A DNA stretch of 63,371 nucleotides, the filler included, from Ministeria vibrans ATCC 50519 (Eukaryota; Protista; Filasterea), in NCBI GenBank assembly GCA_943704425.1. It is 4 parts of 4 records of this genome, joined end to end, with 100 filler letters (N's around TTAATTAATTAA, not from the genome) between each part and the next. Parts side by side here need not be neighbours in the genome. Positions count along the whole stretch, not along the records: positions 26,888 to 54,517 come from CALSCP010001367.1; 3 more parts are not named here. The stretch is one strand, 5' to 3'. The position numbers and the translations under genes are program-made. Positions 27,121 through 53,935 of this stretch are shown here, one piece after another (position 1 is the first letter of the stretch; each line of letters starts with the position of its first letter). A model generated the notes under the pieces. It did not search any database, was not told the origin of the DNA, and saw only the letters and a program-made list of their open reading frames with translations.

Positions 27121-28628
27121 AAAAACCAGTTCCCTTTGACTTCATTGTCGATGGCAAGTTTGTCCGGTCCACTCTGGAGGCTCACATTGCCGAGTGTGAG
27201 CTGTCGATGGAGACGGTGATCACCGTTGAGTACTTGCAAGCACTGCCGCCTCCGCGACCAGAGCAATCGATGGAGCACGACGACTGGGTGGCGGCCATTG
27301 ACGCCTCACGCTCAGGGTAAGGGCGATGCGGAAGAAGCAGGAGAAGACGAGGGTGATCATTCTTGTGTGTGTATGTAGCCGTCTTGTGTCGGGGTGTTAC
27401 GACGGCATTGTGCGCATCTGGGACGAGTCGGGTGCATGCCAGGAGATGCTCGAAGGTCACTTAGAACCTGTGAAGGCAGTCAAATGGGGTAAGTGTGTGC
27501 GTGAGAGTGCGAGTGACCTACTGACAATGTGTCTTTTTTTAGGAGCAACAGTGGATGTGGAGAACGGCGCGCCGGCTCACTCATGTCTGTCCGCGTCGCA
27601 GGACTGCACTGCGCGTTTGTGGAGCAACGTCAATGCCGACGATGGAACCGAGACAGACTGGCACTGTCAGAGTGTTTTTGAAGGACACACAGGAGCAATT
27701 GGTATTCATCATTATTGAGTGAGAAATGCGTAAACTGACTTGCTATCTCAAAAAAGACACCATGAGTTTGCATCCGGATGCGAATGAGCAGATGTTCTGC
27801 ACTGGCTCGTGGGACGAGTCTATCAAGCTGTGGAGCTATACAGACGACTCGACAAGCGAAGAGGTACGTATTTTTGTATCGAATGGGTTGCAGCTAAGCA
27901 TGCTCGATTGTGTGTAGGGGAGCGCAAAACGACAGAAGACGAGCAAACGGCGGGGAAAGAAGACGCGACAAGGGCCGAGCACGGTGAGTGCGCGGGCGAC
28001 GATTGTTGGACATCGGGGGGCTGTATCGGGGGTGGAATGGGCTGCAGGCGGACAGGTGATTGTCTCGGGGGGATGGGACAGCACTTTGCGCGTGTGGAGT
28101 GTCGAGAGTGGCGTCAATGTACAGCGGGCAGACACGGCGTGTGCCGTGACTGCACTCGCTGTTAACGCACAGAACAGTCTGACTGCTGCCGGCCATTGCG
28201 ACGGAGTGACACGTCTGTACGACCTGCGAATGGGCACAACACCACAGGCACTCTCAGCCGACGCCAACGTACTCGTCAAGTGTGCTCTGGCTCCTCCACA
28301 GTCGTCCCACCGTCCTGCCTTTGTCCAGTGTGTCCAGTGGGCTCCCTCACACCACAACCAGCCCTACCTCCTCGCCACCGCCCTCTTCCGTGACTCAGAT
28401 GCCGATTCCGTCGTGCACTTGTGGGACATTCGCGGCACAAACCGTCCGCTCCACTCCATCAAAGATCACACCAAAAAGGTCTCAAACTTGAGTGTCTTTT
28501 TTCTTTTCTGTATCTGACATCTTGTTCCTTTATTCCAACAGGTTTTTGCTCTCGCTTGGGCTGATGATGCTATGCTTTTCAGTGGCGGAGAAGACCACAA
28601 AATCCTCTCACACTCATTTGCAAAGTGA
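27121..28628 (+). CDS. WDR12: Ribosome biogenesis protein WDR12/Ytm1 (NLE + WD40), 5'-partial, multi-exon
   Basis: KPVPFDFIVDGKFVRSTL..LSMETVITVEY..HDDWVAAI, SGCYDGIVRIWD, SASQD, TGSWD, SGGWDSTLRVW, LWDIRG..PLHSIKDH, SGGED. Confidence 0.9.
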
Positions 28629-32816: not shown

Positions 32817-39438
<6,622 letters not shown>

Positions 39439-39654: not shown

Positions 39655-39822
39655 TCAAAACATTGGGGCGGTTTCCCATATTTCTGATTGTTCGGATTTA
39701 GCGTCTGAATCGGCATTGCCCTCGCCATCAGGCGCGTTCGCATCATCATCATCGGCAGGAGCAGCGGCAGCAACAGCAGCAACATCATTATTGCCATTCG
39801 AATACTGTTCTCCATCATCACC

Positions 39823-39859
<37 letters not shown>

Positions 39860-42800
39860 GCAACAGCGGCATTGCCAATCGAACCATTCCGATACTGCCT
39901 TCCATCACCAGTCCCATTGCGTTCACGGTCCTCCTGTTCCAAACCAGCCGCCTCTTCCACTCCCCCCACATCATCACCAGATCCTTGAGCTTCCGTGGTG
40001 GCAGTCGCAGGGAGTTTGAAATAGTCAGTCAGTGTGGTCGCAGCACCCTTTCGTTTGCGCACTTCCATCAGGCGATGGCAGTCTTTGACTTTCTCAACCA
40101 CATCTGGGTCATTCGTCCAGAACGCTTTGTGCTTCGATAGCGTCTTTTTCAACGCGTTCATCTGTGAGGACAGCTTCCTCTCCTTGTCGAGACTTTTCGC
40201 TATGACCTTGTCGCCCAAGGGTGCCTTGGGAATCCTTTGGCGGGGCACCAAGACATTTTTTCGTTTGAGATCGCGATAAAACGTGTCCAGACCCTTGAGG
40301 ACCAGCTCTCGTTGGTACGGCGTGGTAGGCGCGCGCGCAGTTGGGGTCGCAGGCGCGCNNNNNNNNNNNNNNNNNNNNNNGCTTTGCGTTGCAGGCGCGC
40401 TGAGAGGAACACGCTCCGAAGCGGACGTCGTTGGAGACGGCTTGGGCACCATACTGCTCGTGCTGCTTGGATAAATTGGCCCACCTGCAGCAGCAATGTC
40501 AGTGTGCGCACGTGATCTTGAGCTTTCGCTAAACGCCGCCTGCGCGGGACTCCCTCCCAACCCGCGCTCAGCTCCAACGCTATCGTCCACATCTGATCCA
40601 CGTCGACTGTCAATCGTCGCACCGCCAGTGCTGAACCTTACTCGCTTCTTCTCACTCTCACAATCAGCGTCTGATTCCCGTCGACTTCCAGTCGCCGCAC
40701 TACCAGCGCTCCGCCTTGCTAGCTTTTCCTCGAGACTTTCGCGGCGACCGTCCAATTCACGTGGACCAGCGTCACTCATCACGCCACTAGCACTCAACCT
40801 TGCTCGCTTCGTCTTGGAACTCGCAGCACTGTCAGCGTCCGATCCACGTCGACTGTCGTTCACTCCACTACCACTGCTCGACTTTACCTGCACACCACTC
40901 GACGCACTTGTACCGGTCTCCAAAGCATCGGCAGATCGTTTGCTCGTCGGAGTACGCACACGCGTCTCTGCAATGCTCGCGCTTGCTTCAGCCGCCACCG
41001 GATCTTCTTCAATCTTCAACACCACAAAGTTTTTCTTTACGCCACCAAAGTGCCATCGGAGCACAGGATTTTTCAGCCGCAACACTTCTCGCGCATAGCG
41101 AGTCAGAGCGGCAGGAGGCGGCTGGTCCATGAGAAGTGCGTGTGAGTTGATGACAATCATACGCACCTGGTGGGTGTAGCAGGCAGAAGTGCAGCTGAGG
41201 AGACGGATCACTTCAGAGAGGTCATAGCGTTGGCTATCGGCTGGGCAAAGAATCAGTGCCCAAGTTGGTTGACCATCCGGCATGTCGGGCACGGAGTTCT
41301 TAGTCGAAAACTCGGATAGGTTGACAAAGGGACCGTAATGCTCGACAATCGCCATCAACTCTGCCAAGTCCACGTTGGCAGGAACGTCATTCACCTCTTC
41401 GGGCCGCGGAGGCCATGCTGCCAGCGAGGCGCAGTGTCCCATGACTCCACCACGTTGCTGGAGCTTAAGCTGCACAAAGCCCTGGTACTTGAGGACGGCA
41501 AGCCCGGCCATCTCACAGTCTGCCGCGAACTTGAGATCTTCGCGGAACGGCCAAGGCTGGAACCACACGTTCTTCTTTGCGCACGCGGCGACGTTCACAA
41601 GCACAAGGCTGTACACGTACGTGCGCTTGAAAGGCGACGTTGCAACGTGGCGGCCATTCTGACGGAACATTCCCAGCATACCATAGGCATCAGGACTGCC
41701 TGAGCGCCGCTGGAGCTCGCCGGTGTCGTCAGGAAAGCGGTACGTAAACGACGGACGAGCATGGTTGTGAGCACCGAGCAGTTGGCGCTCAAGGTGAGCG
41801 AGCACATCGAAAAAGCTGATCGGCTCAACGGCAAGAATTGGCGAGTCGGTCTCAATGCGCTCCCCGTTGATGACGGCCAAGTGGTCAATGTTGTCGTCAC
41901 ACATGAACATCGTGGCAAGGCCAAGTCTGGTTGCGACACGCTGGCAAAAGAGACGAGCAAAACCAATGCCTTGCTCCACGCTACACGTAGGGCTGTTAGG
42001 GTCAGGAAACATCACCATGTGGGAAGGAAGCTCCATGACCATGCACACATTTCCAACACACTGAACAAATTGTTCGAACTGCGCCTGTCGACACACAATC
42101 ACTCGCACAACCATATCAGTCTCGTCGTGGTCACCCTCCAGAAGTGCTGCACTCCAATCGTGCCGGCCGCTCAGACGCACCGATGGCACAAACACCCACG
42201 AGCGAAGAGGGCGTGTTGCCATGAAGTGATCGTTAAGAGCCAGAATTTCCTCGTAATAAGTCAGGAATGCGCCCTGCAATGCATTTGGAACACTCACGCG
42301 GGTGTCCTTGATGTCCGGCCAAGAGAACCGAAGCATCACGTGTGTAGGGTTGAGAGCCAGGGATGTATAGGCACAAGTACGGAACGGATAGAGATTGCCA
42401 CACTCCTGGTTTGAGAGTGATCTTGACGGGCCACCGAGGAAGGGGATGTCTTGGTTGCAAGCACTCGACGCATCATCCTTCTTCGCAAAGGCAGCAAGCT
42501 CTTCGGAAGGGAACACATAATCGCATGTGAATGGCTCTTGGAGGAGGTGGTCGTACTTGCTTGAAGAGATGTTCCATTCAAACGACTGTCGAACAAGAAC
42601 GTCTTCCTTACGAGGAAAGAGCCAATCGTTGAGGTCGAAGTGGTGATCAACAACGTCGGGGGCCATTGAGAGTTGAGGCCCATAGACATGCCAGCACACA
42701 TCGTCTTGCGGCTCATAAGGAGGACTAAGCCTGTTGATCTCCTTGCGCAGTTGGAGCAGAAGCGACGTAAACGTGCCCGTCTTGCCAATCTGCGGAGCGG

Positions 42801-45800
42801 CCTGCAACAGAAACCGTCGTGGATCGTACCCATCGGCGTTGGAACGACCGTAATCGTAGTTTTTGTATTTGAGCGCGTTGTCGCTGTTGCGCTGGACCTG
42901 TCCCTTGCCTCGCGCGGGAGCAAAGTGACTCCAGTGGAGCGAGTTGAGGTCTTGCTGCTGGCTAATGCGAGCCATGGCCGTGTCGGGTGCGGTGATGATG
43001 GCTTCAAACGATGCCGCTTGAGGGAGTTTCTTGAGACACTTGCGGAAGAGGCCGTTTCCAACGAGGAGCGTTGCTTTGGGAGCGCTCAAAGGTGCATAGC
43101 GACAGACTCGGCCAAGGTCTTGCACGACAGAGGAGAGCGAGCTGGGCTCTGAGGAGTAGCGAGCACGCAGGTCCATGGTGCGGAGCGAGGTGGGAAAAGT
43201 GTCACCGAGGCGACCCTTTTCAGCGACGAGAAGAAGCGTCGGCAGATTGGCAAGGTCCGTATACACCTCAATGGAACGGTGGACGTGTTTGCAGCCGCCA
43301 CAAGTGGAATGAAAACGCGACTTGAGTTGCGCATTGCTACAGCCGCACTTGCAAGTCTTGCCGAGTTGCAGGCAGTGCTTCCAGTAGTTGCGAGCGGTGC
43401 ACTTGCCGTCGATGCCTTTAAACATGGTCGCGACTGACATGCCACCAAAGTCACAGAGAAGCAGGAAGCGGTTTTGCCACTGAGCCAGGTCACGGGCTGC
43501 ACGCACCACCCGCCACATCTTGGTGCCTGCTGCAATGTCGTCAACTCTCACAAGGGCCATGAGGCCGCCTGCCTGAGGATCGGATGACGAGGTCGCGTTC
43601 GAGCTGTGCATGTGGTAAGACCGGTCGCTGGATGCTCCTTTGCCGCTCAAGCCGTACACTATCATTTCCGTCTCAAGACATGCAGAGAACGGCCAAAACT
43701 GGCAAGACAGCGGTCTACTGCTTTCACCAGCAAGATTGCGCATCGCGTCTTCGACAAGCGTACGGCAGTGGGGAGTGGCGAGGTCGCTTTTGCCGGATTG
43801 GGGCTGGCCGAAGCCAAATTTGAGAAGTTTGAGGTCTCGGGCAAACGCGTCATGTGTGGGCGACATCTCCGACAGTTTCTGGAAGTGCAGAGCAGGGTAT
43901 CGCTTGAGCATCGGAATCATGTCAAGACCGCAGGTATTTTCAAGCTTTTCCCAAAGGTCGCGCATCTCTTGGTGGCACTGCTCCCACACTCGCACGGAAT
44001 CCTCGATGTCGTTCTTGACAAACATTGCCGTCAAATCTGGGTAGTCGGGACAATGTTTCTGAAGGACGGAAACGACAATGATGGAGAGCGCGTAGTCGCA
44101 CACGAGTGCCTGCATGAAATGGTTCTCTCCACTTGCGCGCTTGGCGAGGGCAGTGAGCAGGGGGTCGGTACGGAAATGTTGACGATGGTGCTCCTGGTAG
44201 CGCATTGAGTTGAGGTAGAAGGTGAGGGAGTGGTAGACGGGAGTGTCGGCGGATGGTGCGTCGTCAATGCAAAACTGCGTGGCCAAAGCCTTTCTTGCAT
44301 TGTGCGCTGAGAGGGTGACGCAACGTTCGTCGTCGACCACTTCGGTAGCAAGAAAGACCTCGGTCGGAGACTCATCGGCGGGACTGAGCATAACCATGCC
44401 GTAGCCTTGGGTGTTGTGGAGCGAGAAGTAGTTGCGAGGGTCGGCGACGCGAGTGCTTTGCGAGAGCCCCGTCACATGGACAGTGTTGTCACGTGACCAC
44501 TGCAACACATGTGTGGGCGCACCAGTCTTGTCACAAGAGAAGAGCATCACCTCATCAGAGTTGACGGAAGCGGCGTGAGCGGGTGCGGAAAGAAGAAGCC
44601 AGGTGTGTTCAAGGGAGAAATGGCCGTCGTCAGTGGGGCAAATCGTGACAGAATTGCCACTGTGATGGACACGGAGGACATTGTCACTGCAAAAGTGCGT
44701 CAACATGATTCGACGGCCTTCTTTTTTGATGGCGTCCTTGAAACGGAGCAGGTTGGCACCGAGCTCGGACACCTGCGCTACTGGGTTGAGGCTGCGGCGC
44801 GGTATCTCCGATGAGCGGTAGAAGGAAGCGAGAGAATTGGACCAGTCGATGATGTTGCGAGGGCCGACGCGCGACTTGCTCGTAAGAAGTGCGTATGGGG
44901 TTGCGGAGACAAGGACGACAATGACGTTGGGAAATGCGCCGAGAGAGTTCACCAACATGTCATTGGCACTGGTACTCGATATGCCCCAGTGACACTCGTC
45001 AGCAATTATCACAAAGAGCGTGCTGCGGTTGGTCTTGACGGCGATCTCAAGGTCGCTCATCTTCTTGATGTTGCTGGCTTCGTAGCGATGCATCTCATTG
45101 TTGGTGCTGTAGTCGCTGGAGGCAAAGAGCCCGGCTTTGCCGAGACGGATTGCAGTCTGAAACTCGAGCGTGCGATAGTTGGCGGTGCCCACGCGGAACT
45201 TCATGTCCTTGAATTGACCGAACTTGTCGTCGCCAAAGTGCTCCTTGATGCGATGGAGAAGCAAAGCTGCGAGGTGTTGCTGGGTTGGAAAGATGCCTGA
45301 TCCGTCCGACAACGTAGGCTCGGTCTCACAAACAGTCGCAGGAGCGATGTTGTTAACATCCGTACTAATGACGTCCTCCTCGAGAAGTTCGACGGTTTGA
45401 GCAACACGTACGGCTGGGGTGTCGTCCGTGTTGGGATCGCTGCTCTCCGTGTCGGGCTCTTCGTCGCTCATGCGCGAGACGCAGTCCTCGTACAGTTCGT
45501 TGCCGATGGAGAGACGGTAGCCGATATACGTCGGCTCGGACATGGAGTAGATCAAGGAGATGTCGCGTGTTGGGTCTGATGGAGACGGCAGCCGTTTGAC
45601 CACTTCCCTCAACCTTGGCGTGAAGGACGTTCGCATGGACGGCGTCTCGAAGAATTTTATGAGATCTTCAAGTTGATTCCAGAGGTCCTTGAGCGTCTTT
45701 GGCCTATTCGGCCCGTCCAGGTGATCTATACCTTGACGCATGAGCAGGCAAAGGAGCGAGGGGAAAAGGAGCTGGCGATCATTGTCTCCGTCGACGAGCT

Positions 45801-46168
45801 GTGCAAGGTCCACGTCGCCCTCAAGCGGCTCGGGCTTGTCGTTGTCATCGATCAACTCGTCGGAATCGTTCACTTCGCGGTAGACAACCAAATAGCCGAC
45901 GGGTCTGCTCAAAAGAAACAATCATTAATTAAATTGAATGAATGCCCAAGGATAAACAAATAGAGATCAAAGGCAGTCACAGATCAAATCAACAAATCAA
46001 TATCGGGCTAATGAGCCTTCCATAGGTTCAGTGAACAATGATTCATTATTCAGTAGAGATAATAGAAGAATAATAGAATGCAGACATTCGTTCGACATTC
46101 GTAAATAATTATGCTCATTCAGCTTACTGATCAGCGCACTGGTCCGTTGGATCCCCCTGAGCAGCCAT
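39655..46168 (-). CDS. GREB1-like protein: circularly permuted SF2 helicase/ATPase + TAGT-type (GT-A) glycosyltransferase; main exon ~6.25 kb plus at least one upstream exon
   Basis: Walker B LFVIIADECHWG (~44989-45000), motif III VSATPY, KGRLGDTFP..MDLRARY..VVQDLGRVCRY, then Walker A LLQAAPQIGKTGT (~42772-42810) C-terminal to them; GT region FVPSVR..GIGFARLFCQ..MFMCDDNI..VLVNV..REDLKF. Upstream exon MAAQGDPTDQCADQ splices in phase (gtaagc donor ~46128, AG acceptor ~45905) and may extend further 5'. Confidence 0.8.
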
Positions 46169-47108: not shown

Positions 47109-49151
47109 TTATTCATCTTCTGGGTGCACATTGGTGATGCTCGATGTCGACGAGTTGCGGTGTTGGGCGGCGGCAACGACACGGAAGGGAATGGAGAGTT
47201 CACCGGCGGCGGTGGAGAAACGGCGAATGGGACGGGGGGCCACTTTGTGCGGTGAGGGTTGTGCGAGAGGCGGAAGGAGAGTTGTGGAGGAGGCGTTTGA
47301 CGTGATTGATGCGGCGGATCCACGGCGTTTGCCTGAGACGATGTCTGCGACTGTGGGCATTGTGTCGACGTACGTCGAGTCGTCTTGGCTGTTGTCGTTG
47401 TCATTGTCGTTGTCGTTGTTGTCGGTGGTGCTGTCGTGGTCTTGTACATCGGTGGCGGGTGCGGGCGAGGTGACAGGCTGTGCAGGAGGATTCGGACGCA
47501 TGCTGAGCCAGCGAGCACGGTTTGCGTTTAGCTGGTCTAGGCACTGCTGCGTTTTGGGAAGTAGTTGCGCGAGAGTGGTGTATACTGGTGTGAGAATAAA
47601 GTCACAAAAGTTGATGCTCAGCGAGATTTGGTCGCCCGTCAGTCGGTCCATGTTGGGCGAGATTGGCAGTCCAAGAGCGCGTTCGCGATCACCCTGTGCA
47701 TAGAACTCTTCAAGAACCATGTCGGACCAGCGCTTGCAGACATCCCAGCGCTTCCAGGCGTTGCTGATGTCGGCGCAGTGCACAAGGACATTGCCGAGGA
47801 GCAGGCGTGCGTCGGCGCTCGCCCACACGCCCGCCACGGCATTATCTGCGCGACGTTGTTCGACGAGTGTGTCGAACGAGGACACTAAGGCAAAGTGCTG
47901 CGCCATGGTGGTCGCAAGAATGTTCTGGATCAGCTGACTGCGCACGCGCCGACGAGTCTCGTCCGTGTCGAGGCCCGCGAGAATCTCATGTTGCTTAAGC
48001 AGTGTGAGTGCCACCGAGCAGCTGTGGCTCTCGAGCACCGAGTCGTTGTGGTAGATCATGCCAACGTCGCTCGTAGCCGCCAGCTGGAAGCTGTTGCTGG
48101 TGCCCGGATGGTCGAGGTCGTGACAGAGTGCCGCCAGAAGCAGCGTCACTTGTTCGAGGCGCGTTAGGTGTTGACCCGCCTCGCATTGCATCAGAAACAA
48201 ACCGACGGTCTGTACAACTACGTAATTTAAGTAGAGCAAAAAGCGTATTAAAGGCACAATAATATAAATAATAATATATAATAGGAATGATAGTAATAAT
48301 AATATATAATAGGAATGATAGTAATAATAATAGTAAGTATAATAACAATAAGAATGATAATAATAATAGTAATAAGAAAGTATATTACCGTCACAAGCAT
48401 GCCGAAAATTGTGGTATGGATTATCGGAATGGTACAGTAGGCGACAGCTGCCCACGAAATCAAGTAATCGGTCGTAGGATAGAGAGAGGATGTTGAGGGC
48501 GTCAAAGCGGAGGAGCATCTGGATGGGCACGGCGGAAAGTTGAGCATCGGAAAGGGAGAAAATGTTGAAGGTGAAGGTGTCAAGACCCTCAAGTGAGTGG
48601 TTTGGAATAAAGTCCGATCGTGGCTGCAAGCGTCGCGTGGCAGAGGCAAGGCAAGGTAGTGGCGGTGATTGACGATGTTGTGGCGGTGGCTGCACCTGCA
48701 GATGTCGAATGTAGGAGAGAGGTGCGACGGCAGAGTGACCGAGAAGGCGCTGTCGCTCAGTGGCTGGAATGCGCGACTGCGACCGCGATTGTGCCGGCAT
48801 TGAGTGTGACCCAGTGACCGGACGGCCCTGTAGTGCGTCATGGCTGCGCGCTGTTGTCGCCCTGGCCGCCGAGCGAGGTGTATCTTCCCGATTCAGCGAA
48901 GAAAAAAAAGTTCCGCGTGACGGATTGGCCGATTTGGCGCTCAGAGGTCTTCTTGGAGGCCATGCATTGGTGTAGGGCAGGGGAACGGAGAGAGGCACGA
49001 GCTGACTAGTGCTCAGGGGCAAGGGTATTCGCTTGCTGCCATCAGCAGTGGTCGTCAATGGCAACGCACGTCGATCGCCCGCAGCAAATTCAGTTGGCTC
49101 GAAGCGGTATCCGAATCGTGGACGGGGGTGTTTCGCAGAGGAGGACGTCAT
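47109..49151 (-). CDS. Class I 3',5'-cyclic nucleotide phosphodiesterase (one 171-bp intron, 48218-48388)
   Basis: NPYHNFRHACDV, LAALCHDLDHPGTSN, SVLESH, ILATTMAQH, VHCADISN, EEFYAQGDRERALGLPISP. Confidence 0.93.
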   Translation of the reverse strand: MTSSSAKHPRPRFGYRFEPTEFAAGDRRALPLTTTADGSKRIPLPLSTSQLVPLSVPLPYTNAWPPRRPLSAKSANPSRGTFFSSLNREDTPRSAARATTARSHDALQGRPVTGSHSMPAQSRSQSRIPATERQRLLGHSAVAPLSYIRHLQVQPPPQHRQSPPLPCLASATRRLQPRSDFIPNHSLEGLDTFTFNIFSLSDAQLSAVPIQMLLRFDALNILSLSYDRLLDFVGSCRLLYHSDNPYHNFRHACDGNILSYYYYYYHSYCYYTYYYYYYHSYYILLLLSFLLYIIIYIIVPLIRFLLYLNYVVVQTVGLFLMQCEAGQHLTRLEQVTLLLAALCHDLDHPGTSNSFQLAATSDVGMIYHNDSVLESHSCSVALTLLKQHEILAGLDTDETRRRVRSQLIQNILATTMAQHFALVSSFDTLVEQRRADNAVAGVWASADARLLLGNVLVHCADISNAWKRWDVCKRWSDMVLEEFYAQGDRERALGLPISPNMDRLTGDQISLSINFCDFILTPVYTTLAQLLPKTQQCLDQLNANRARWLSMRPNPPAQPVTSPAPATDVQDHDSTTDNNDNDNDNDNSQDDSTYVDTMPTVADIVSGKRRGSAASITSNASSTTLLPPLAQPSPHKVAPRPIRRFSTAAGELSIPFRVVAAAQHRNSSTSSITNVHPEDE

Positions 49152-49349
49152 CACAAAGTGAAGAGCAACAATTAAAATGAATATTGAATCATATTAACAT
49201 GGATAAAATAATCATTTTGGTTCATTTCGACCCCTCTCCTCAGTCGGGTGACTCAGTTCTGAGTCCAGTCCCCTGAATCTATTGAGACTATTCCTTGAAC
49301 CTTATGCTAGCGTAGTTGCTACTTGTCTTCAACAACAATGACATTTATC

Positions 49350-52356: not shown

Positions 52357-53935
52357 TCAATCAGACCACTCGTCCTCGTCGACTCCATCAAAGGTGTCTT
52401 GCTCAAGAGGCTCGTCCTCGCGTCCACCCATTTTCTTCGCCATTGCCTCCACCAGCTCTGCCTTCTTTTGCTCGTCCGACTTGTACTCTTCAATCTTGAC
52501 GTGCGCATACTTGCTCTCCTTGACGGCCACTTGGGGCGCCTCCGACAGCCGCATCATGCCGTCCGGGCACATGTCCACCCACTCAAGCGGCTGCAACTCG
52601 CCAGCCAGAAAGTCGTCTGCCTGCATCGACGGGTCCCAGCGACACCGCGTTGGTGGCAGCACGTCGTCCTGGAACACTTCCTTGCGTGTGCGCGGCACAA
52701 AGAACTGCACCTTGACCACGGATGTCTTGCACAGCTGCACCATCCGCAACAATTCCACCTCACGCACATCACACACACTCTTGGGCAGTGGCGCCAGTCC
52801 AATCACCGAGTTGGCAAGCTTGCACTGCGTCAGCGAGTGCAGATAGGGCGCCTCATCATCCACTTCAAACAGCGCGACGGACCCTCCGCCCCGACTAAAT
52901 GCAAACACCACCGAGGTGTCCTCGTCAAAGTGCGGAATCAACACAGCAGGCGCCACGTCAAGCGTCGCCTCGCCCAGCACCGTTCCACTGGTTGCATCAA
53001 TCAGCTAAAATACAGAACGACAGAAAGAAAGAAAGAAAGAGAGAGAGAAAGAGAGAAAGGAGGGAGAAACCGAGTGATAGAGAGAGAGAGAAAGGAGGGA
53101 GAAAGAAACAAAGTGATAGAGAGAGAGAGAAGCAACGTGATAGAGAGAGAGAGAGAAGCAAAGCGACGCAGAAAAAAAAGAAAAGAAAAAAAGAGAGTGA
53201 GTAAGAAGTGCGTCGTCACTTTGACGTGTGTCTGTGTGTGTTGTACCTTGAGCTGACGCGCCGAGCTTCTGTCAAAGCAACTGATAATGACACGCGATGA
53301 GTTACCAGCCCATGTTACTCGAGCACCGCGTTTGCCCTCAAACACAACGCTCTCCTGAAAACGATAAAAAACAGAGAGAGAGCAAGGTTACAGACACTAC
53401 ACTCTCCTTTTGTGCTTATCGTACGGTGAGAAGAGACCCGTCAAGTGCATCAAACACGCGCAGTGAGCGATCCTTGCACACTGTCGCAAGCATCGATCCG
53501 TCGTAGTTGAAACACATTCCCAAAACTTGATCCTATCCATTAAAGCATAATAACATTACTCTGGTGTGCGGACTGAGGACGGAACGTTTGTGTTGTTACG
53601 TTGTGACCAAAAAACTCGCGAACAGGCTGGTCAGGATTGAGCAGGTTCCACATGCGGACGGTATGGTCACTGGCGGACGAGACGAGAATGTCCTTTGCAA
53701 GGGGATGGAAAAGCAAAAGGTTCACACGGCCGTCGTGTGCATTAAAGTCCACGTAACACTGCTCGAGCGGGTCGGTGTCGTCAAGGCCGTCGCCGGGAAT
53801 CTGGAAAATGCGCACGACGCCGTCTTCGCAGGCACATGCAAGTATGCCGTTGTCAAAGGGGTCCCATTTGATGTCCAGCACAGGCACTCCTGCGATACAA
53901 AAAGAAGAAAATTTGTGCGTCTTAGCTCAGACCAT

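Follow-up and report, generated by a model that had tools for sequence, protein, structure and literature searches.

The locus at positions 39655 to 46168 of the window (the whole stretch of 63,371 nucleotides of Ministeria vibrans DNA that was analyzed) very probably carries an intact nuclear gene encoding a divergent GREB1 (cpSF2-TAGT) family protein with an intact two-enzyme architecture, in which a circularly permuted SF2 ATPase is followed by a glycosyltransferase domain. As judged from sequence, the combined evidence of the cpSF2-GREB1 match, the TAGT match and the motifs is far beyond chance. The family is known and widespread, with homologues that are equally intact in many eukaryotes, and the locus adds no new principle. 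A beta-trefoil, a zinc knuckle, motifs in the C-terminal tail and a probable first exon of 41 bases are features that were absent from the earlier note on this DNA.

RESULTS

Gene structure and continuity

All eight motifs listed in the earlier note were found in one minus-strand open frame of 2,088 codons (39655-45921) (Table 1). By frame arithmetic, the putative exon 1 joins in frame to 45904; this short first exon, with its putative splice, is probable, and its ATG accounts for the upper coordinate of 46168 in the earlier note. The other candidate start is Met61 of the open frame, at 45741. Contig 10 of run X4 extended 61 bases into the putative intron (to 45965), and splicing out of this intron was seen in none of the contigs aligned to the locus. 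In a comparison of contigs across the assembly gap, a single contig of run X1 was collinear over positions 40000-45999 with zero indels, and the true length of the gap in run X1 is therefore 22 letters. In run X4 (another label or strain), 24 letters were missing at 40357, in frame, and contigs of run X3 ended exactly at the gap. The collinearity of X1 and the in-frame deletion of X4 thus indicate that the frame is continuous through the gap. Compared with three other assemblies, the gene differed solely by missense or silent changes and by in-frame indels. The (GCA)16 repeat contains the start of contig 7 of run X4.

In run X4, a minority contig lacked a 63-base in-frame stretch, which includes the family-conserved ETxxIV strand; read depth in this bubble was 15.2 for the path with the stretch and 8.6 for the path without it, and the flanks had a depth of about 24. 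An intron of the GREB1-like gene was ruled out here, the GT..AG of the stretch reading on the plus strand, i.e., the opposite strand. The absence of the stretch may represent an allele or antisense splicing. Of a possible RNA run, just three contigs, short and of low depth, fell in the gene, and the kind of the aligned contigs is uncertain. The neighbors of the gene in the 27.6-kb piece that carries it are Rif1 and phosphodiesterase genes; since its G+C content agrees with theirs, the gene looks like a resident host gene. The best matches of the phosphodiesterase had an identity of just 31 to 42% and were spread over diverse eukaryotes.

Table 1. Features of the GREB1-like gene, in positions of the window (residues are numbered along the open frame)
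Feature	Position	Strand	Remarks
Putative exon 1	46128..46168	-	ATG at 46168; 41 bases, i.e., 13 codons and 2 bases; GTAAGC donor at 46127
Putative intron	45905..46127	-	223 bases; GTAAGC...pyrimidine tract...CAG; A+T-rich; in-frame stop codons
Main exon	39655..45904	-	Part of the 2,088-codon open frame; stop codon included
First RecA-like half	44827..45294	-	Residues 210-365; best stretch of Pfam cpSF2-GREB1, model positions 3-174
Walker B, IIADECHWG	44983-45009	-	DECH at 44989-45000, residue 308
Motif III, SATP	44896-44907	-	Residue 339
Beta-trefoil domain	44251..44730	-	Residues 398-557 (AF2 model residues 199-358); inserted in ATPase
63-base in-frame stretch	43614..43676	-	Residues 749-770; lacking in one minority X4 contig
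Cys/His zinc knuckle, CxCxC...CxxCxHxH	43279..43353	-	Residues 857-881; directly before motif V
Motif V-like, KGRLGDTFP	43192-43218	-	Residue 902 (GDTFP at 906); second RecA-like half
Motif VI, QDLGRVCRY	43096-43122	-	Residue 934; second RecA-like half
Walker A (P-loop), APQIGKTGT	42772-42798	-	GKT at 42778-42786, residue 1046; placed after motif VI
TAGT-type GT-A domain	41440..42216	-	Residues ~1236-1494; Pfam TAGT, AF2 and fold matches
GIGFAR	41953-41970	-	R1323
MCDDN	41890-41904	-	D1342-D1343-N1344 at 41890-41898
REDLKF	41527-41544	-	E1461-D1462 at 41536-41541
Low-complexity C-terminal tail	39658..40974	-	Residues 1650-2088; motif reading; outside every Pfam family
Assembly gap	40359..40380		22 N inside a Pro/Ala/Thr low-complexity linker of the C-terminal tail
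(GCA)16 repeat	39824..39871	- (repeat read on plus strand)	Encodes a poly-alanine run

ATPase with permuted motif order

Pfam cpSF2-GREB1 matched the protein in three stretches (E 3.1e-69; 234.8 bits against a cut-off of 26.2) and scored 238.8 bits on a 901-residue piece alone. In the same open frame it is followed by TAGT, which upholds the GREB1-family architecture proposed in the earlier note. The circular permutation claimed there was likewise borne out: Walker B and motif III precede motifs V and VI, with the P-loop next and the glycosyltransferase domain last (DECH at 308, SATP at 339, GDTFP at 906, QxxGRxxR at 934 and GKT at 1046). Relatives kept the identical motif order in the family alignment. 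The segment holding motifs V and VI (43096..43218) corresponded to positions 373-428 of the cpSF2-GREB1 model. The SF2 set is complete (Walker A GKT, Walker B DExH, motif III SAT and motif VI QxxGRxxR) and near-invariant in the family: of the rows that align there, 108 of 110 have DE[CA]H and all 124 have QxGKT, and GDTFP and Q[ED]LGRxCRY are near-invariant in the aligned relatives. Over about 150 relatives, all listed motifs were near-invariant, and the view that both catalytic motif sets are intact holds in that each motif is such a family column.

In an AF2 model of the ATPase (901 residues; pTM 0.77), strand and helix elements alternate, Walker B and motif III each lie where a predicted strand ends, in blocks modeled with confidence, and the P-loop is bordered by a strand (837-841) and a helix (848-863) in a block with pLDDT 88-94. 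Both fold searches with this model listed only matches to the beta-trefoil insert, any helicase staying below Z 8.9. The Pfam and AlphaFold check suggested in the earlier note thus recovered cpSF2-GREB1, TAGT and the GT-A fold, whereas the search for an SF2 fold gave beta-trefoil matches only. Pfam ResIII was matched by 5 of 25 relatives and DEAD by one, and in relative P0065 the ResIII and DEAD matches (residues 354-474) lay inside its own cpSF2-GREB1 stretch (319-1013); these matches link the family to SF2. Searches of the PDB by sequence, with the single protein and with the family profile, found no solved relative, the chance matches lying at E above 0.04.

Glycosyltransferase domain and its phage relatives

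The Pfam TAGT match (E 1.3e-11; 45.3 bits against a cut-off of 27.5; residues 1243-1360) was limited to model positions 3-104 of 205, i.e., the first half; the second half of the domain, with the ED motif, aligned to relatives. Conservation in the family was 82 of 83 for the R of GxG[FY]AR, 82 of 83 for DD and 66 of 68 for ED. The AF2 model of the domain adopted a GT-A fold (pLDDT 81.8; pTM 0.85) that matched solved GT-A enzymes in the PDB (Foldseek E 7e-6; VIA Z 13). The best structure matches in BFVD were phage TAGT-domain proteins (E 1e-10 to 1e-8; TM 0.5 to 0.59), which were thus stronger, at E 1e-10, than any solved GT-A enzyme. Together with the match to PHROG 842, beta-glucosyl-HMC-alpha-glucosyltransferase (E 1.7e-4), they agree with the homology to phage DNA-base glycosyltransferases stated in the earlier note. 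The active-site pattern R...DD(D/N)...ED is complete and is common to phage DNA glycosyltransferases and the base-J glucosyltransferase (JGT). The structure matches also included TAGT-like proteins from giant viruses that infect protists (Bodo saltans virus and ChoanoV1).

With JGT, the phage TET/JBP-associated glycosyltransferases and the T2/T6-type enzyme, the domain shares the GT-A fold and this pattern, the ED being followed by an aromatic or aliphatic residue (ED[aromatic/aliphatic]). Sequence identity to JGT and phage TAGTs is just 10 to 16%, however, and the phage TET/JBP-associated enzymes stand alone (about 230 to 310 residues), whereas here the glycosyltransferase makes up the C-terminal portion of a giant fusion with an ATPase. 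JGT and the phage TAGTs also have an operon or pathway link to a 5-methylpyrimidine dioxygenase, and none was seen in the 27.6-kb piece: no TET/JBP gene was found among its 18 ORFs, in line with the earlier note, or within 10 kb of homologues P0001, P0004 and P0005. Linkage of TET/JBP to a glycosyltransferase is not expected in eukaryotes.

Inserted domains and tail

The beta-trefoil matched Symfoil/FGF, ricin-B-type lectins and MIR-like domains in Foldseek (E 1e-3; TM to target 0.6 to 0.7) and reached Z 9 to 11.4 over 120 to 145 residues in VIA-align, the Pmt1/Pmt2 MIR domain being among the matches (6p2r; Z 9.0). In the zinc knuckle, C859, C861, C874, C877, H879 and H881 are each the commonest residue of their column (22 to 24 of 36 aligned relatives). 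The tail, which is predicted to be disordered, basic and phosphorylatable, contains four RRxS motifs, two NLS-like K[KR]x[KR] basic clusters (KRAR and KRVR), a lysine-rich segment of about 100 residues, poly-Ala and an acidic end. No credible neighbor of the C-terminal segment was found in the ESM Atlas (best score 0.89, below the trusted level). Lenient-threshold Pfam searches with four pieces (the N-terminal 193 residues, the trefoil, 1501-1650 and 816-942) gave nothing new that was credible, and cpSF2-GREB1 was the sole match of the last of these (127 residues with the zinc knuckle and motifs V and VI).

Distribution and comparison with described proteins

An exhaustive HMMER search found 473 relatives, with the best match (39% identity; E 3e-83) to a stramenopile homologue that already carries the name GREB1-like protein (Hondaea fermentalgiana; GBG30820.1). 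A word-indexed protein search with residues 200-1450 found no match; because the exhaustive search did find relatives, this reflects a sensitivity limit and not novelty. Homologues were present in a labyrinthulid (stramenopile), an amoebozoan, a glaucophyte, corals, shrimp and annelids. Those of Hondaea, Planoprotostelium, Cyanophora, corals, shrimp and annelids were the best matches (E 3e-83 and below) and had the identical motif set; roughly two in three aligned relatives retain the zinc-knuckle Cys/His columns, and conserved consensus positions extend through the beta-trefoil region. They differ in that the Hondaea and Planoprotostelium proteins have two tandem modules each, whereas the Ministeria vibrans protein has one, that some coral paralogues have added ankyrin, OTU or reverse-transcriptase domains, and that the homologue of the annelid Owenia has an added ZZ finger and one other relative an added kinase domain. 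A search from a coral homologue led to a large coral expansion. In a FastTree tree, which was weakly supported and distorted by long branches, the GREB1-like protein stood apart from Hondaea in a weak pairing with the marine-metagenome protein P0004; it forms a long branch, and its identity to any relative is at most 32 to 39%.

Vertebrate GREB1 and GREB1L share with it PF20692 (cpSF2-GREB1) and PF20691 (TAGT) in the same order within about 2,000 residues, a permuted ATPase with the P-loop after motif VI, and a GT-A domain with a DxD-type metal site (PMC7968844). Vertebrate GREB1 differs in having an N-terminal zinc-binding domain (PMC7968844), for which the Ministeria vibrans protein showed no Pfam match and no Cys/His cluster in residues 1-200; GREB1-specific N-terminal domains were also absent in five relatives of GREB1-like length. 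Since the zinc-binding domain was not found, we regard the protein as a member of the wider family, its orthology to vertebrate GREB1 not being established. The ATPase of vertebrate GREB1 is described as catalytically inactive (PMC7968844), whereas here all motifs are intact; in view of the inactive vertebrate domain, glycosyl transfer may be possible without the GREB1-like ATPase. The tail of the Ministeria vibrans protein is lineage-specific.

The JBP2 protein of kinetoplastids is an SNF2 ATPase fused to a thymine hydroxylase. By analogy, its design would resemble that of the GREB1-like protein, in that a motor ATPase acting on chromatin or nucleic acid is joined to an enzyme with ties to the base-J pathway. 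Its SNF2 ATPase is unpermuted, however, the fused enzyme is a dioxygenase and not a glycosyltransferase, and the homology is limited to the SF2 superfamily.

DISCUSSION

We propose that the GT-A domain would hold a UDP-sugar via the DDN-metal site and move the sugar to a hydroxyl of a polymeric acceptor, and that the ATPase would use ATP to bind, travel along or remodel the polymer, most plausibly chromatin-bound nucleic acid, exposing the acceptor. Such a role of the ATPase parallels that of JBP2. The sequence, as far as we can read it, does not separate a DNA-base acceptor from a protein acceptor. By analogy with human GREB1, the acceptor may be protein Ser/Thr on a nucleic-acid-associated substrate, to which we give a little under an even chance; a hydroxymethyl-pyrimidine of DNA, the type of acceptor that JGT and phage TAGTs use, is rather unlikely, and something else (RNA or a glycan) somewhat more so.

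A protein O-glycosyltransferase like vertebrate GREB1, which would glycosylate Ser/Thr in proteins bound to chromatin or RNA and recruit its substrate by means of the ATPase and the beta-trefoil, is plausible, if held at clearly less than even confidence. It agrees with the Pfam families shared with GREB1 and with the only bench-tested GREB1 protein, that of humans, which is reported to be a protein O-GlcNAc transferase modifying ER-alpha (PMC7968844). It also agrees with the trefoil near the GT-A domain, which is reminiscent of the GalNAc-transferase lectin domain and of the Pmt1/Pmt2 MIR domain and is of a type typical of lectin/MIR modules of protein O-glycosyltransferases. Moreover, the family is widespread in animals, where DNA glycosylation is not known. 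That biochemical report is a single one, however, on a distant vertebrate counterpart whose ATPase is called inactive, whereas the one found here is fully conserved; Ministeria vibrans has no ER-alpha, so that the substrate would be a different one anyway, and the closest structural relatives of the glycosyltransferase domain are DNA-modifying phage enzymes. These relatives speak instead for an enzyme that glycosylates hmU/hmC in host genomic DNA, a base-J-like mark, with the SF2 motor tracking DNA, which we nevertheless consider unlikely. The nearest characterized glycosyltransferases (phage TAGT, beta-glucosyl-HMC-alpha-glucosyltransferase, and JGT with its common active-site pattern) act on DNA, the phage TAGT matches exceed those to solved GT-A enzymes, the fused ATPase retains all helicase motifs, the tail has NLS-like clusters, and the design parallels JBP2. 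SF2 motors nearly always act on nucleic acid. A hydroxymethyl base, on the other hand, requires a TET/JBP-type dioxygenase, and such a gene was found neither in the 27.6-kb piece nor beside the three homologues. The same architecture with intact motifs also occurs in corals, shrimp and annelids, for which, to our knowledge, no glycosylated DNA base has been reported, and both the trefoil and the one assayed GREB1 point to protein. The base-J-like DNA mark put forward in the earlier note is thus unsupported, with the acceptor indistinguishable by sequence, no TET/JBP gene nearby and protein as the reported substrate of the assayed enzyme. The word unrecognized was overstated as well, the family, its Pfam models and the hypothesis of DNA glycosylation for it having been published (Iyer et al. 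2013, as cited in PMC4111573 and PMC7968844).

The large lineage-specific coral expansions with tandem paralogues, the ankyrin, OTU and reverse-transcriptase fusions of coral proteins and the kinase fusion of one relative would fit a genome-conflict (anti-virus or anti-transposon) system directed at invading nucleic acid, or at its proteins, which it would mark or disable instead of setting a host epigenetic mark. The two adjacent genes of Hondaea, one having the doubled module, the TAGT-like proteins of giant viruses of protists and the fast evolution of the family, with its long branches, would fit as well. We find such a system improbable for Ministeria vibrans: one copy lies in the 27.6-kb piece, between housekeeping-type genes (Rif1 and phosphodiesterase) and with no defense-type neighbors, and expansion patterns in animals say little on a single-copy gene. 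A decaying or silent gene, i.e., an open frame without function, is hardly credible. The sparse contigs of the possible RNA run and the minority X4 contig without 21 codons, including the conserved strand, would suit it, but a 6.3-kb open frame with all family-invariant catalytic residues could not survive without selection, and the assemblies differ by substitutions and in-frame indels alone.

Although the GREB1 family has clinical prominence in hormone-dependent cancers, its biochemistry is poorly understood. The GREB1 glycosyltransferase domain derives from DNA-modifying phage enzymes, and protein is said to be the substrate of the one member that has been assayed. With its fully conserved ATPase, this intact gene, which has almost no introns and is apparently present in a single copy, lends itself to two questions, that of the ancestral acceptor and that of the purpose of the ATPase. 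A base-J-like glycosylated hydroxymethyl-pyrimidine in nuclear DNA outside Euglenozoa, written by an ATP-driven cpSF2-TAGT enzyme, is distinctly unlikely; if it were true, the active-ATPase GREB1 branch in protists and invertebrates would be DNA-base glycosyltransferases.

Conserved motifs and family assignment

All eight motifs proposed in the earlier note were found in one minus-strand frame (see the table), and their residue positions showed that the permuted order described there (Walker B, motif III, motifs V/VI, Walker A and then the glycosyltransferase) is real. When the GREB1-family architecture was checked against Pfam, the protein matched both domains above their cut-offs, namely, the circularly permuted SF2 ATPase (cpSF2-GREB1; E = 3.1e-69, 234.8 bits versus a cut-off of 26.2) and the TET-associated GT-A glycosyltransferase (TAGT; E = 1.3e-11, 45.3 bits versus a cut-off of 27.5). 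Conservation was assessed by phmmer alignment of each motif segment to 155 retrieved proteins. DE[CA]H was kept in 108 of 110 aligned rows, S/T-A-T-P in about 110, G-D-T-F-P and Q-[ED]-L-G-R-x-C-R-Y in approximately 140 to 150, and Q-x-G-K-T in all 124. In the glycosyltransferase, the arginine of GxG[FY]AR and the D-D pair (mostly followed by N) were each kept in 82 of 83 rows and E-D was kept in 66 of 68. Judged by these alignments, the catalytic centers appear intact, as the earlier note had supposed, with every near-invariant family motif column retained. Since the motifs are near-invariant in the relatives, intact ATPase motifs are the norm of the family among them and not a peculiarity of the window protein. 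The helicase domain of vertebrate GREB1 is described as catalytically inactive in PMC7968844.

Features of the GREB1-like gene and its surroundings
Feature	Position	Strand	Residues	Remark
IIADECHWG	44983-45009	minus	305
SATP	44896-44907	minus	339
KGRLGDTFP	43192-43218	minus	902
QDLGRVCRY	43096-43122	minus	934
APQIGKTGT	42772-42798	minus	1042
GIGFAR	41953-41970	minus	1318
MCDDN	41890-41904	minus	1340
REDLKF	41527-41544	minus	1460
Beta-trefoil domain	44251-44730		398-557	Within permuted SF2 ATPase; VIA, Foldseek
CxCxC...CxxCxHxH cluster	43279-43353		857-881	Directly before motif V
WD40 ORF fragment	27984-28517	plus		WD40, E = 8e-15
Rif1 homologue	33341-37438	plus		1,365-codon ORF; Rif1_N, E = 8e-26; convergent with GREB1-like gene
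Class I 3',5'-cyclic-nucleotide phosphodiesterase	47109-49154	minus		PDEase_I, E = 6e-70; directly upstream of GREB1-like gene
Coronin-type WD40_4 ORF fragment	52357-52980	minus		E = 6e-10

A word-indexed protein search with the window protein gave no match, and an exhaustive HMMER search returned 473 relatives (32 with E < 1e-30), the best being a "GREB1-like protein" of the labyrinthulid Hondaea fermentalgiana (39% identity). Other named relatives were from Planoprotostelium fungivorum, Cyanophora paradoxa, the shrimp Palaemon, the annelid Owenia and the coral Oculina. The coral expansion of cpSF2-TAGT proteins was large, some copies carrying added ankyrin, OTU or reverse-transcriptase domains, and one further relative had gained a kinase domain. 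Hondaea harbors two adjacent GREB1-like genes (positions 843 to 28475 of its locus, L004), a tandem duplication in which one gene has a doubled module. Duplication, module doubling and expansion in corals (relatives P0278-P0394) form a pattern often met in conflict-related genes. In a FastTree phylogeny of 54 modules, the window protein was a long branch that paired weakly with a marine-metagenome protein, and no row of the tree was more than 32% identical to it. On its sequence, it is a complete cpSF2-TAGT protein carrying both sets of active-site motifs and a new, rather divergent member of an already published family. The two Pfam models have likewise been published, as has the hypothesis of DNA glycosylation (Iyer et al. 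2013, cited in PMC4111573, PMC6163654 and PMC7968844), and protist members are already annotated.

Gene structure and integrity

The gene consists of a single very long minus-strand ORF (39655-45921; 2,088 codons), which plausibly follows a putative first exon of 41 bases and an intron of 223 bases: an ATG at 46168, the upper coordinate chosen in the earlier note, starts a 41-base stretch closed by a GTAAGC donor, and a CAG acceptor at 45905, after a pyrimidine tract, would by frame arithmetic give an in-frame join to 45904. The alternative start is Met61 of the ORF, at 45741. Residues 1 to 200 are acidic and had no family match. The low-complexity C-terminal tail (residues 1650-2088), for which neither a Pfam family nor a credible Atlas neighbor was found, holds four RRxS motifs, two K[KR]x[KR] clusters, a lysine-rich segment, an acidic end and a poly-alanine run encoded by a (GCA)16 repeat (plus strand). 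RRGSDAD, RRESLEE, RRESDAD and RRGSDVD are interspersed with KRAR and KRVR (40500-40850; residues 1691-1776) and look like repeated basophilic-kinase sites beside NLS-like clusters; the basic clusters would be compatible with nuclear import.

An assembly gap of 22 N (40359-40380) lies inside the Pro/Ala/Thr-rich linker of this tail, and public assemblies were aligned to positions 40000 to 45999. One contig of sequencing run X1, from which the window sequence may have come, was collinear over the whole interval with no indel. Run X4, which carries another organism label, lacked 24 bases at 40357, in frame, and contigs of run X3 ended on either side of the gap. Collinearity in X1 and the in-frame indel in X4 indicate that the ORF is continuous through the gap, which most likely reflects a polymorphic indel lying between short repeats of high G+C content. 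At the gap (40357-40381), strains differ by an in-frame indel of 24 bases with GCAGGCGCGC-like repeats on its flanks, which is probably why assemblies break there. Substitutions among assemblies were few (4 silent and 8 missense, one of the latter altering two bases of one codon), all indels between them were in frame, and no difference was disruptive.

The four runs compared with the gene all consisted of contigs. X4, labeled "RNA?", had an even depth of about 24 over the whole stretch and one contig extending into the putative intron, and may well be DNA; X18, also labeled "RNA?", gave three short contigs in the gene at depths of 3 to 5. A minority X4 contig (depth 8.6, versus 15.2 for the contig with these bases) lacked positions 43614 to 43676, i.e., 63 bases or 21 codons, including the conserved ETxxIV strand. 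An intron of the GREB1-like gene was rejected here because the GT..AG sits on the plus strand; the skip would be an in-frame deletion in the heterozygous state or, alternatively, the result of antisense-transcript splicing.

Predicted structures of the two enzymatic segments

The structure of residues 1200 to 1500 was predicted with 32 relatives (pLDDT, 81.8; pTM, 0.85), and this model matched the GT-A fold, in line with the earlier reading, both by Foldseek (COLGALT1, TarP, TarS, RmlT and B3GNT2 in the PDB; E = 7e-6 to 5e-4) and by VIA-align (LH3 glycosyltransferase domain, Z = 13.2 over 189 residues, with many others at Z = 12 to 13). The best matches anywhere for the predicted fold were phage proteins annotated as TET-associated glycosyltransferases, together with one beta-glucosyl-HMC-alpha-glucosyltransferase (E = 1e-10 to 2e-8; TM, 0.5 to 0.59), and the PHROG family of the T-even beta-glucosyl-HMC-alpha-glucosyltransferase also matched by sequence (E = 1.7e-4). 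The R...DD(D/N)...ED pattern corresponds to R1323, D1342-D1343-N1344 and E1461-D1462 in the window protein.

For the ATPase segment (residues 200-1100; pLDDT, 68; pTM, 0.77), confident blocks of the model contained the strands of Walker B and motif III as well as the displaced strand/P-loop/helix. Both fold searches were filled by the beta-trefoil (Foldseek E = 1e-3; VIA Z = 9 to 11.4) and therefore did not confirm the putative SF2 fold; Pfam ResIII and DEAD, also matched in 5 and 1 of 25 relatives, respectively, lend it indirect support. VIA matches of the trefoil comprised IL-1/FGF, ricin-B lectins and CBM and MIR domains, and the predicted domain might bind sugar or protein. Conserved columns across relatives in this region indicate that the trefoil is probably a family feature. 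The cysteine/histidine cluster, kept in approximately 24 of 36 relatives (about two-thirds), is a probable zinc knuckle inside the second RecA-like half. Both inserts probably belong to the whole family and should show in any public GREB1 model; no description of either was found in the literature searched, and PDB sequence searches with the single protein and with a family profile found no solved structure of any member.

Neighboring genes

The convergent neighbor encodes a homologue of Rif1, a telomere and replication-timing factor. No close relative of the upstream phosphodiesterase was found in the protein collection. In Planoprotostelium, a phosphodiesterase (PROFUN_10681) and a GREB1-like gene (PROFUN_10671) lie on one 86.5-kb contig, which is probably a coincidence. 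The two WD40 ORF fragments, further out, are probably exons of multi-exon genes. G+C content was similar across the GREB1-like, Rif1 and phosphodiesterase genes and fell between genes, as would be expected if the gene is resident and the eukaryotic genome compact. No TET/JBP dioxygenase was present among the 18 ORFs scanned around the GREB1-like gene, in agreement with the earlier note, or within 10 kb of three homologues (P0001, P0004 and P0005).

Candidate activity and acceptor

The protein would move a sugar from a UDP-sugar onto a hydroxyl acceptor in a metal-dependent reaction, and this step would be coupled to a motor that is driven by ATP and works on a polymer. That the acceptor is a protein we place slightly below an even chance. 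The family is abundant in animals, in which, to our knowledge, no glycosylated DNA base occurs, and the predicted beta-trefoil insert is reminiscent of the lectin and MIR modules that protein O-glycosyltransferases carry. The sole assay of any GREB1 protein, as given in PMC7968844, points the same way. Transfer to a DNA base seems rather improbable, with the following arguing for it: all characterized non-GREB1 relatives of the glycosyltransferase domain act on DNA, phage TAGT proteins are the best structural neighbors of its model, the motor is of the nucleic acid type, and the design would parallel that of JBP2, the kinetoplastid base-J thymine hydroxylase with an SNF2 ATPase. An acceptor of some other kind we consider unlikely. 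The gene of M. vibrans is a reasonable experimental entry point to the family.
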